A DNA stretch of 64,000 bases, taken from the sequence record NC_061451.1; one strand, given 5' to 3'. The notes below the pieces were generated by a model. That model made no database searches. It was not told the origin of the DNA and saw only the letters and a list, made by a program, of their open reading frames with translations. Made by a program: the position numbers and the translations under genes. Shown here piece after piece: positions 23,285 through 29,191 of this stretch (positions are counted from its first letter, which is position 1; each line of letters starts with the position of its first letter).

Positions 23285-23669
23285 TCAGTTACGTGATCAA
23301 TTGACCGAAGCTGAATACGCAGAACTTGAGCGCACTACAGCGCGGTCGATCATGGAACAAGTGTGGGCACTACGCGGCTGGACGGTAAAGCTCGACTGGT
23401 GCAACTATATGTGCGACGACGTTGATTGGTTATTCCATGGTAATGAGCGTAAAGCACCAGTTGATCACGCTATGCCGAATTCTGGTGTTGGCACTAGCAT
23501 TGAGCAGCATCGCCTTAATGTCGTGTTTACTCCTACTGAGGTTAGCGTTACGAACTCACTGGTAGACAGCCCTGTCACGGGCACTGGTATGTCACTGCGC
23601 TGTGCTTACTGCGCGTGGCTTTTAGAAATCGAAAAACAAAAGGCTGCCAATGCGCTGCAATCTGACTGA
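23271..23669 (+). CDS. hypothetical protein (NinX/DUF2591-like?)
   Basis: P....GTSIEQHRLNV...G.SLR.A pattern. Confidence 0.55.
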   Translation: MSSVNQLRDQLTEAEYAELERTTARSIMEQVWALRGWTVKLDWCNYMCDDVDWLFHGNERKAPVDHAMPNSGVGTSIEQHRLNVVFTPTEVSVTNSLVDSPVTGTGMSLRCAYCAWLLEIEKQKAANALQSD

Positions 23670-24165
23670 ACTGCCTATCAAACTCGATCAGGCTGAAAAC
23701 ATTATGGGCAGCGTGTTCGCGCTTGCTGCTGGCTCCAAGTCCAAACGCCGTGCTACTGCGGCAATGCTCATTCACTTCCATGAAGGCTACCCTACCATTA
23801 TCAGTAGTGGCGTCAATGGTACTGTGCCCGGTGAGAGCAACGTGTGTGAGAATGAAGACCTCACTCTGACGTTTGCGCACGTCACCCACGCAGAAGCTAA
23901 CTGCCTCAATCGCATGGACGAATACAGTCTGTGGCCAGAAGAAGAGGACATCCTGTTTTGTACTGACAGCCCATGTCCTGATTGTTTGCAGCAACTCGAA
24001 TCTGCTGGTGTGCAGACCATCATTTATGCGCGTGAATACAGACTCACAGAGCACCTGGATAAGTCTGCTATTCGCATGTATTGTCTCGATATTGAGAACG
24101 TGCGGGCGTCTTTGCTGAAATCTGTAAATCGTATAGACGAAGTGATTGCAACCATACCTACTTAA
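23650..24165 (+). CDS. dCMP deaminase
   Basis: SGVNG.PG, HAEAN, SPCPDC Zn motifs. Confidence 0.9.
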   Translation: MRCNLTELPIKLDQAENIMGSVFALAAGSKSKRRATAAMLIHFHEGYPTIISSGVNGTVPGESNVCENEDLTLTFAHVTHAEANCLNRMDEYSLWPEEEDILFCTDSPCPDCLQQLESAGVQTIIYAREYRLTEHLDKSAIRMYCLDIENVRASLLKSVNRIDEVIATIPT

Positions 24166-24868: not shown

Positions 24869-25366
24869 ATGAGCGACATTAATCAATTACGCCGCAACTG
24901 GTTACAGTCTATGGACGTGCCCGAAGAGCTGGTAGACAAAGTATGCGGCACTGACATTGAACAGCAAGACCTGTTTGAGCGTCTAAGCGCACAGCAACAA
25001 CGCAAAGTAACGATCGGCCTTGCGCTGCTCCATCTGCAAGTGCCTGATGAAATTCGTTTCGATTTGCTCACCAATCATCTGGACGAGACTGAACGTTTGG
25101 TCAAAGAGCAATTCGAAGAACTGGCAGCACGTCTCGTTAATCAAGTGACGCAGACGGGTTCACCGGAGAAGCAATCAATGACAGGCGGTGTTCGTTTAGC
25201 AATGCTGATGAACATCCTTGGCTTTGATGATACCACGCTGCACGGTATCATGTCGAACCCCAGCTTGATGCGTCAGGCGGGCCTTGTTGCTATGACTGGC
25301 CTTCAAGATATGGGACAGAAAATACAGCAACTTTACGACGGAAATAAAAGCAATGAGCCAAAATGA
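24869..25366 (+). CDS. hypothetical protein
   Basis: GAGGA RBS, 165 aa. Confidence 0.7.
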   Translation: MSDINQLRRNWLQSMDVPEELVDKVCGTDIEQQDLFERLSAQQQRKVTIGLALLHLQVPDEIRFDLLTNHLDETERLVKEQFEELAARLVNQVTQTGSPEKQSMTGGVRLAMLMNILGFDDTTLHGIMSNPSLMRQAGLVAMTGLQDMGQKIQQLYDGNKSNEPK

Positions 25367-25490
25367 ATTAGACGATTTCGACATTCCTGATCTGGACGAA
25401 GCTGAACAACGCGCAGAAGCTAAGCGTGATGGTGGCGGAGAAGTTGTCGAAGCATCTGATGAATGTGAAGGCGGCGCCTGCAAAATCTAA
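25353..25490 (+). CDS. 45-aa acidic peptide ending CEGGACKI (NrdA C-terminal tail mimic); not in ORF track
   Basis: MSQNELDDFDIPDLDEAEQRAEAKRDGGGEVVEASDECEGGACKI*; overlaps upstream stop and is followed by a terminator. Confidence 0.75.
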   Translation: MSQNELDDFDIPDLDEAEQRAEAKRDGGGEVVEASDECEGGACKI

Positions 25491-25493
25491 TTC

Positions 25494-25515
25494 ATGGGGC
25501 CTCGTGCCCCATTTC
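25494..25515 (+). terminator. intrinsic terminator
   Basis: ATGGGGC-CTCGT-GCCCCAT-TTC. Confidence 0.65.
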
Positions 25516-25534
25516 TGTTTCTCGGAGAGATGCT

Positions 25535-28090: not shown

Positions 28091-29191
28091 ATGACAGGTC
28101 CTCTCGATCTCACTAACCCACAGCACTTCGAACTGTACTCGCTGCACAGCGTTGATGCACAGTATATCAATCTGTGTGACGCACTCCTCACTCAGGGTAC
28201 GCACGAATCTGACCCAGAGCGCACTACTGATACGTGGCATACGCTGATCGGTATTGGCTTCCAGTTGTCTAACACCAACATCGCTTTCCCTGCGCTGCTG
28301 TCTAAGCGTGTCAACGTCCGTGCAGCTATCGATGAATCATGCTGGTTCGCACGCGGTGAAACGAACATCGCAACTCTCGGTTCTAAAATCTGGAACGAGT
28401 GGGCAGACGAAGAAGGTGAGAACGGTCCTATCTACGGCTTCCAGTATCGCAACTGGCCTGACATTAAAGTGTTCAATACTGTCGAAGGTATGATTGAGCA
28501 GCACATCCCACCAGCAATGATTGAGCGCATCTCGAAAGAGATCAACCGCATGAAGGCGCAGGGCTATATCGAAACTGCGTTGCCTGATGGTCGCGTGCTG
28601 TATGAAGGCTATATCGATCAGTACGCTGATGCACTACGTCAAATCATGGCGCGTAGTCGTAGCCGCCGCATTCGTGTGCAAGCGTTCAACCCTGGTTACG
28701 TTGGTATGCAGAGCCTGCCTCCGTGTCACACTGAGTTTGAGTTCAACGTGACCAAAGCTACTGCGTATGAAATTGCGCAGATGGAAGCACGCTCAATGCG
28801 TCCTGACGCCGACTCACTGCATATCGTGGTGACGATGCGCAGCAATGATGCACTTCTCGGGCGCCCCTTCAACATCGTTGGCTACAGCGCCATGCACCAG
28901 TTGTTTGCGAAGTGGGCGGGTCTGAACGTTGGTTCGTTTACTCTGAATGTGACCAATATGCACATGTACGATCACCACCGCGAAGCGTATGCACAACAGC
29001 GTGAGCAGTGGCTGGAACTACAGACGCAGATGCAGACGACAGGCAAACCTGTTGTTTACCCTACCCTCGAAATCACTGACGACATTCTGGGCCTGACGCC
29101 AGAAGAGCTGCTGGATAACGTCAACGTCGATTGGTTCGAGCTGGTGGACTACTCTCCTAAACCTGCTGTTAAAGGACGCGTAACCAAATGA
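28091..29191 (+). CDS. thyA: thymidylate synthase
   Basis: IWNEWAD, GPIYGFQYRNW, SRR, LPPCH, RSND..LG.PFN, HMY. Confidence 0.93.
   Translation: MTGPLDLTNPQHFELYSLHSVDAQYINLCDALLTQGTHESDPERTTDTWHTLIGIGFQLSNTNIAFPALLSKRVNVRAAIDESCWFARGETNIATLGSKIWNEWADEEGENGPIYGFQYRNWPDIKVFNTVEGMIEQHIPPAMIERISKEINRMKAQGYIETALPDGRVLYEGYIDQYADALRQIMARSRSRRIRVQAFNPGYVGMQSLPPCHTEFEFNVTKATAYEIAQMEARSMRPDADSLHIVVTMRSNDALLGRPFNIVGYSAMHQLFAKWAGLNVGSFTLNVTNMHMYDHHREAYAQQREQWLELQTQMQTTGKPVVYPTLEITDDILGLTPEELLDNVNVDWFELVDYSPKPAVKGRVTK

Follow-up and report, generated by a model that had tools for sequence, protein, structure and literature searches.

The 45-residue product of gene gp040 of the Erwinia jumbo phage pEa_SNUABM_7 carries at its C terminus what appears, judged from its sequence, to be a copy of part of a host enzyme. 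Its last 16 to 19 residues reproduce, with both redox cysteines, the flexible tail of NrdA, the large subunit of the host's class Ia ribonucleotide reductase (RNR). For its role we propose a surrogate alpha tail that would act in trans and shuttle electrons from thioredoxin or glutaredoxin (Trx/Grx) to host NrdA, a proposal on which we are evenly divided. No description of a phage-encoded NrdA-tail mimic was found in the open literature.

gp040 and its genomic setting

The window analyzed here comprises bases 1 to 64000 of pEa_SNUABM_7 (Snuvirus; genome of 265,635 bp). Within it, gp040 (MPK74_gp040) occupies positions 25353 to 25490 on the plus strand, with an ATG start, 45 codons and a TAA stop. 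The product is strongly acidic (15 Asp plus Glu versus 4 Lys plus Arg; net charge of about −11), and its C terminus reads ...SDECEGGACKI. An initial annotation, made from the letters of the DNA, had described an acidic 45-residue frame with this ending, and the coordinates and translation agree with that description. The terminator that it placed behind the frame corresponds to a hairpin with a 7-bp G+C-rich stem and a T-run at 25494 to 25522 (plus strand), a terminator-like element that closes the transcription unit. The frame had also been called unannotated, which does not hold as such, since the public record lists MPK74_gp040 as a "hypothetical protein" and only its function is unannotated.

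The gene immediately upstream, gp039 (24869 to 25366, plus strand), encodes a 165-residue protein with no assigned function that is kept only in Snuvirus and Alexandravirus and that gave no match in Pfam and PHROG searches. The ATG of gp040 lies 14 nucleotides inside the 3' end of the gp039 open reading frame (ORF), and this overlap of stop and start suggests translational coupling. The wider neighborhood is one of nucleotide supply, as the initial annotation had recognized, with a dCMP deaminase gene (23650 to 24165, plus strand) 1.2 kb upstream of gp040 and a gene for a 366-residue thymidylate synthase homolog (28091 to 29191, plus strand) 2.6 kb downstream. The latter scored 126.5 bits against TIGR03284, above the cutoff of 108.35, and is labeled only "hypothetical" in the public record.

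The short protein can be divided into four parts, all encoded on the plus strand. Residues 5 to 14 (ELDDFDIPDL; 25365 to 25394) form an acidic and hydrophobic motif with a weak likeness to the C-terminal docking motif of the RNR small subunit, NrdB. Residues 14 to 26 (25392 to 25430) contain the sole helix predicted by AlphaFold2 and form a linker, and residues 27 to 29 (25431 to 25439) are a Gly-Gly-Gly hinge preceding the tail. The tail itself, the mimic of the NrdA redox tail, spans residues 30 to 45 (EVVEASDECEGGACKI; 25440 to 25487) and holds the cysteine pair Cys38 (25464 to 25466) and Cys43 (25479 to 25481). Apart from the helix the AlphaFold2 model was coil, with a mean pLDDT of 58.8, and this combination fits a disordered peptide. 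Searches of Pfam and NCBIfam with gp040 gave no match, and PHROGs returned only phrog_10239, to which no function is assigned there. Thus, at 45 residues and with no Pfam or NCBIfam match, gp040 lacks the catalytic ten-stranded barrel (Ribonuc_red_lgC/lgN) and the ATP-cone of NrdA, and what it has is the NrdA-type flexible tail with two cysteines at the extreme C terminus.

Likeness to the NrdA C-terminal tail

When a profile of the gp040 family was searched against the PDB, residues 751 to 761 of Escherichia coli NrdA aligned end to end with the last 11 positions of the profile, terminus on terminus. Taken by itself this match has an E value of about 1 to 2, as only 11 residues are aligned. 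NrdA surfaced with the family profile alone; a single-peptide phmmer search of the PDB produced only spurious matches to LptE.

The tail was then surveyed in one genome per bacterial species with the pattern C-E-x-G-[A/G]-C-K-I-stop, which yielded at least 120 loci. About 105 of those listed are NrdA C termini, from Enterobacterales, Vibrionales, Alteromonadales, Pasteurellales, Orbales and some Betaproteobacteria. Among the matches listed, the NrdA of at least three Erwinia species ends ...DDGCESGACKI. A longer likeness to gp040 was seen, among the matches listed, in Proteus, Providencia, Photorhabdus and Xenorhabdus, whose NrdA ends ...EEVVESADSDCEGGACKI, compared with GGGEVVEASDECEGGACKI in gp040; the likeness to these Morganellaceae proteins extends over about 17 residues, with about 14 of 18 identical. 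In the Alexandra homolog all of the final 10 residues (DGCESGACKI) are the same as those of E. coli NrdA. The initial annotation had called gp040 a free-standing mimic of the redox tail of the RNR alpha subunit, and the profile alignment, the occurrence of the same tail in Erwinia NrdA and the conservation of the cysteine pair, its spacing and the terminal Ile all bear this out.

At the nucleotide level, a blastn search of 5,426 E. coli genomes with the ORF and its terminator gave no match. With DNA-level similarity to E. coli nrdA absent, a recent capture is not visible; the sequence fits old descent and convergence alike, and the two cannot be told apart on this basis.

Conservation of the gp040 family

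The initial annotation had proposed a tBLASTn search of related phages as a check, and this search found relatives of gp040 in 72 phage records, which belong to several jumbo-phage lineages not related to one another. The carriers are Snuvirus, Alexandravirus, Dickeya phage AD1, Y3-type phages, the chimalliviruses Miami and PCH45 and their relatives, phiR1-37, FBKp24, SA002 and SPLA10. A HMMER search over 1.84 billion representative proteins recovered only 32 clusters (50% identity), and in the 30 of these that were read the module reached the last residue of the protein every time.

The 42 distinct family members all have a Cys at position −3 and exactly two cysteines within the last 45 residues, so that the cysteine pair is kept throughout. 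The two are separated by four residues in 38 members and by three in the other 4. The last residue is Ile in 41/42 and the penultimate one Lys in 29/42, a Glu directly follows the first Cys in 33/42, and GGGE occurs within the last 25 residues in 36/42. No further ORF in the 265-kb genome of pEa_SNUABM_7 has a comparable terminal two-Cys motif preceded by acidic residues. We conclude that gp040 is a genuine gene, conserved beyond chance.

The final 66 nucleotides of the ORF (25425 to 25490) were 92% identical between Snuvirus and Klebsiella phage Miami and its relatives, the distant Miami-type chimalliviruses, in which the rest of a 3-kb query had no match. This identity suggests strong constraint on the module or its lateral transfer. 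Among the last 22 codons, Snuvirus and Miami differ at 5, all of them synonymously, and codon choice differs again in other lineages. Synonymous-only change together with varied codons places the constraint on the protein, and we therefore rejected the view that the nucleotide identity is due to an RNA or DNA element.

The module of the gp040 family also terminates proteins of 84 to 296 residues, with two types of N-terminal domain. Neither these fused domains nor the neighbors in other phages matched Pfam or PHROGs. A RiPP precursor was considered and ruled out, as the neighbors are not the same from one lineage to the next and none of them matches an enzyme family of Pfam or PHROGs. In phiR1-37, the homolog g117 (L005:2956-3111) stands solitary behind a tRNA gene and is almost without transcript in the published infection time course, with RNA-seq values of 3.9, 1.5 and 1.2 versus hundreds to tens of thousands for its neighbors (PMC4848604, supplement).

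The tail on other phage proteins

Scanning viral contigs with the same tail pattern gave 73 loci, of which about 25 are true NrdA. About 35 others are short acidic ORFs of 40 to 86 residues with several unrelated N-terminal parts, and no nrdA or nrdB was found in the flanks of these short-ORF loci. The remainder are larger proteins that terminate in the tail. Among these is gp48 of phage N4 (L210:33632-34003; NC_008720.1), a 123-residue member of PF13876 that ends ...DDNCEGGGCKI and that weakly matched PDB entry 9e4w (E = 9e−4). PF13876 is the family of the Acb4 anti-CBASS sponge (PMC11722364). The tail also terminates proteins of 123, 263 and 360 residues without a recognized domain.

Several further loci were observed. 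On contig L028 (1249 to 1437, minus strand), a 63-residue zinc-ribbon-like protein with two CxxC pairs has an NrdA-type tail at its end. Free-standing ORFs of 46 to 60 residues that end ...DDGCEGGACKI were found in at least five Neisseria genomes (L093, L103, L170, L173 and L187) and on viral contig L042; from their sequences these probably belong to a further family of tail peptides and are carried by prophages. The peptide of contig L030 had no tblastn match among named phages.

An NrdB-like motif in the N-terminal part

In the same bacteria NrdB finishes with an acidic stretch in which hydrophobic residues keep a fixed register, as in ENDFDDFQL and DDFSDFQL of Erwinia species. To score the N-terminal parts of the tail peptides for this motif, a position-specific scoring matrix (PSSM) was built from 46 distinct NrdB 9-mers and compared with 2,000 shuffles of each N-terminal part. 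The match of gp040 (LDDFDIPDL) was weak, with a P value of 0.036. Much closer matches were obtained for L030 (VSDFDDFDL) and L026 (SLDFDDFEL), both with P values of ≤0.0005, for FBKp24 and L024 (SLDFDSFTL), with P values of about 0.001, and for P0035 and L051, with P values of ≤0.002. With the same matrix the motif was not significant in the peptides of Alexandra, SNUABM_3 and phiR1-37. The idea that one peptide may copy both RNR tails is thus a lead for the wider phenomenon and a weak one for gp040 itself, whose N-terminal motif may dock weakly on NrdA at the groove for the NrdB tail.

RNR genes of the carrier phages

The initial annotation had considered that the peptide might boost a phage RNR and had asked whether the phage NrdA lacks a tail of its own. 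The first idea fails for pEa_SNUABM_7, a phage without any RNR and hence with no NrdA to examine. A tblastn search of the whole genome with six diverse class Ia NrdA proteins and one E. coli-type NrdB (E ≤ 1e−3) detected neither nrdA nor nrdB. A Pfam search of 30 ORFs of at least 450 residues identified 23 families, none of them RNR; gp220 and a few ORFs of more than 1,300 residues were covered by the tblastn search. The annotation of the whole genome names no RNR either, and no small ORF with a CxxC motif of the Trx/Grx type was seen in the annotation or with a regular expression.

Serratia phage PCH45, an unrelated jumbo phage of the nucleus-forming kind, encodes an NrdB (L213:24783-25889) with 80.6% identity to the E. 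coli type and a complete docking tail, and no NrdA was detected anywhere in its 212,807 bp (E ≤ 0.01). With nrdB present and nrdA absent, the PCH45 beta subunit can only pair with host NrdA. Phage N4, whose replication needs host RNR, has neither nrdA nor nrdB. The three fully checked carriers (pEa_SNUABM_7, PCH45 and N4) thus come from three unrelated lineages and all lack the alpha subunit, in agreement with a reliance on host RNR; SPLA10, being syntenic with PCH45, was not counted as independent. In a host Tn-seq study, the thioredoxin reductase gene trxB was found to contribute to PCH45 infection (PMC11797060), and nothing on the essentiality of the PCH45 homolog of gp040 was found in the text of the host Tn-seq preprint.

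Proposed mechanism and alternatives

De novo supply of DNA precursors depends on RNR alone, and the turnover of the enzyme is limited by the tail-mediated regeneration of the active site. In class I enzymes each turnover leaves a disulfide in the active site, which the C-terminal cysteine pair reduces before it exits and is itself re-reduced by Trx/Grx; the NrdA tail is a natural substrate of both Trx1 and Grx1. The sequences show that the tail is mimicked, conserved and portable and that the phage has no RNR, and from this we infer that gp040 would bind NrdA, would undergo redox cycling and would stimulate the enzyme. In this model pEa_SNUABM_7, having no RNR, has to live on the host enzyme. 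Made in excess, gp040 would enter the NrdA active site as the native tail does, reduce the disulfide after each turnover and depart oxidized, and host thioredoxin or glutaredoxin would re-reduce it. The peptide would thereby provide a second channel of electron delivery in trans, and the dNDP output needed for a 265-kb genome would be raised or sustained. A second dithiol that acts straight on the RNR active site has been found to add to tail-mediated reduction (PMC4078304).

Stimulation is favored over blockade by the strict retention of both cysteines at their natural spacing and by the PCH45 genome with its NrdB only. A boost to host RNR, one of the roles offered in the initial annotation, also gains indirect support from that nrdB without nrdA together with the contribution of host trxB to PCH45 infection. 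The location of gp040 among genes of nucleotide supply is likewise in keeping with a shuttle. Several points count against a shuttle. The tethered tail of NrdA is present at very high local concentration, and a free peptide must therefore be abundant or docked. Docking in the beta-tail groove would bring gp040 into competition with NrdB, the means by which beta-tail peptides inhibit RNR, and docking is itself called into question by the weakness of the NrdB-like motif in gp040 and by the lack of a significant match in Alexandra, SNUABM_3 and phiR1-37. The near-zero transcript level of phiR1-37 g117 also counts against the shuttle, and the presence of the tail on an Acb4-family domain in N4 indicates that it may serve a partner other than NrdA.

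The same contacts could serve the opposite end if gp040 filled the active site of host NrdA as well as the groove for the NrdB tail, blocking subunit association or tail access. Such an inhibitor would shut down host dNTP synthesis, for instance, to halt host replication or to starve competing phages, with an effect like that of Sml1 or synthetic beta-tail peptides. The resemblance of the N-terminal motifs of several tail peptides (L030, L026 and FBKp24) to NrdB tails such as ENDFDDFQL speaks for inhibition; peptides from the C terminus of the RNR small subunit inhibit the enzyme competitively, and Sml1 competes with the RNR alpha tail. We nevertheless consider inhibition unlikely, since a phage without its own RNR has a 265-kb genome to fill, the host-type NrdB of PCH45 would be senseless beside an inhibitor of the only NrdA it can use, retention of both cysteines at the natural spacing suits full dithiol-disulfide exchange and not a plug, and gp040 itself shows only a weak beta-like motif. 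A different partner would be involved if host Trx/Grx, and not NrdA, recognized the tail, with reductants being diverted or else recruited to the tail-bearing protein. This fits the portability of the tail, which is found on N4 gp48, on the L028 protein, on the proteins of 123, 263 and 360 residues and on the longer members of the gp040 family, and it fits the importance of host trxB for PCH45 (PMC11797060). Yet a dithiol peptide in a reducing cytoplasm uses no reductant unless it is oxidized, the NrdB-like motif that co-occurs in several peptides points to NrdA, as Trx/Grx do not bind that motif, and the carriers checked have no NrdA, in keeping with dependence on host RNR. A handle or decoy for Trx/Grx, the decoy being another role offered in the initial annotation, is accordingly quite unlikely in our estimation.

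The resemblance might also have arisen by convergence unrelated to RNR, the cysteine pair being a metal-binding or dimerizing knuckle on an acidic, possibly DNA-mimicking peptide. Acidic disordered proteins are common in phages, and the E value of the NrdA profile match would by itself permit this reading. We regard it as very unlikely in view of the complete identity of the last 10 residues in Alexandra and the extended match to Morganellaceae NrdA, the constant position at the extreme C terminus with the same cysteine spacing and terminal Lys-Ile, and the recurrence of the same tail on unrelated proteins of phages that infect hosts with such an NrdA tail. The initial annotation had named a recent dead remnant of nrdA as the outcome that would overturn its reading, and the last 16 to 19 residues do resemble the 3' end of nrdA. 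A remnant was excluded by purifying selection in many lineages, with the ORF kept in 72 records from several genera and its tail changing only synonymously, and by the absence of any other NrdA-like sequence in the genome. The N-terminal part of the ORF is moreover its own and is conserved, its start is coupled to the gene before it and a terminator follows, and we give the remnant next to no chance.

Comparison with known systems

In its proposed role gp040 comes closest to the NrdA tail, provided here in trans. It shares with the E. coli tail (Cys754/Cys759) the last 8 to 11 residues, the Cys-x4-Cys spacing, the Lys-Ile end and the acidic residues that come before, and it differs from NrdA in being a separate 45-residue polypeptide, with no barrel or ATP-cone, from a phage that lacks RNR. 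Among proteins that stand free, its nearest analogs are the yeast regulator Sml1 and the Sml1-type regulators Spd1, Dif1 and Hug1, which resemble gp040 in being small, disordered and free-standing, and the target, RNR tail-dependent regeneration of the active site, is presumably the same. These proteins attach to the large subunit of RNR, where they compete with the C-terminal tail, and Sml1 is inhibitory. There is no sequence relation between Sml1 and gp040: no Sml1 relative was present among the matches to solved structures (PDB, with the peptide and the profile), and Pfam assigns gp040 to no family. Unlike gp040, Sml1 has no redox cysteine pair, and the intact pair in gp040 points to electron delivery over blockade.

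By PSSM, the motif of several sister peptides was indistinguishable from NrdB C termini, a likeness to the inhibitor peptides derived from the RNR small subunit. In the sister peptides it is internal and N-terminal and joined to a copy of the alpha tail, and in gp040 it is weak. With the thioredoxins, glutaredoxins and NrdH redoxins of phages, gp040 would share the role of providing electrons to RNR. It differs from them in having neither a thioredoxin fold nor a CxxC motif (the cysteines are four residues apart), in comprising only 45 residues and in being predicted to be disordered (Pfam and AlphaFold2). Acb4 is connected to gp040 through N4 gp48, which belongs to PF13876 and has the same kind of tail. 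gp040 itself has no PF13876 match, and only N4 gp48 and its relatives have the domain, so that the kinship is that of the portable tail only.

Wider significance

We tentatively suggest that the terminal residues of host NrdA serve phages of Gamma- and Betaproteobacteria as a short linear motif that can be carried by different proteins. The smallest carriers would add a copy of the NrdB docking tail and so plug into the alpha subunit of host RNR, and phages without an alpha subunit (Snuvirus, Alexandravirus, PCH45-type chimalliviruses and N4) would tune or commandeer host dNTP synthesis in this way. Other phage proteins with the tail, among them N4 gp48 of the Acb4 family, would be anchored by it to the machinery of RNR or Trx/Grx. 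Mimicry of short linear motifs is well known in eukaryotic viruses, and if our suggestion is true, this would be a clear case from phages, in which a tail peptide of 45 residues would be a very cheap means of taking over a central host enzyme. It would make testable whether an RNR tail is fully functional in trans and why some phages have nrdB without nrdA, as well as what role is played by an orphan gene that many jumbo phages conserve and by the C terminus of N4 gp48.

Other features of the genomes and contigs

The thymidylate synthase homolog of pEa_SNUABM_7 exceeds the usual length of ThyA by about 100 residues, and its match is broken into several stretches; from this it may be a modified-pyrimidine enzyme. 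Among the large ORFs (at least 450 residues) of the phage, one has an intein splicing domain (PF14890; E = 1.3e−7), one has a C-5 cytosine methylase domain, and two have a KMPT-N domain. On viral contigs L021 and L060, ORFs of 597 and 467 residues with an NrdA tail align only from about residue 302 of NrdA to its end, which indicates that nrdA may be split in these phages.
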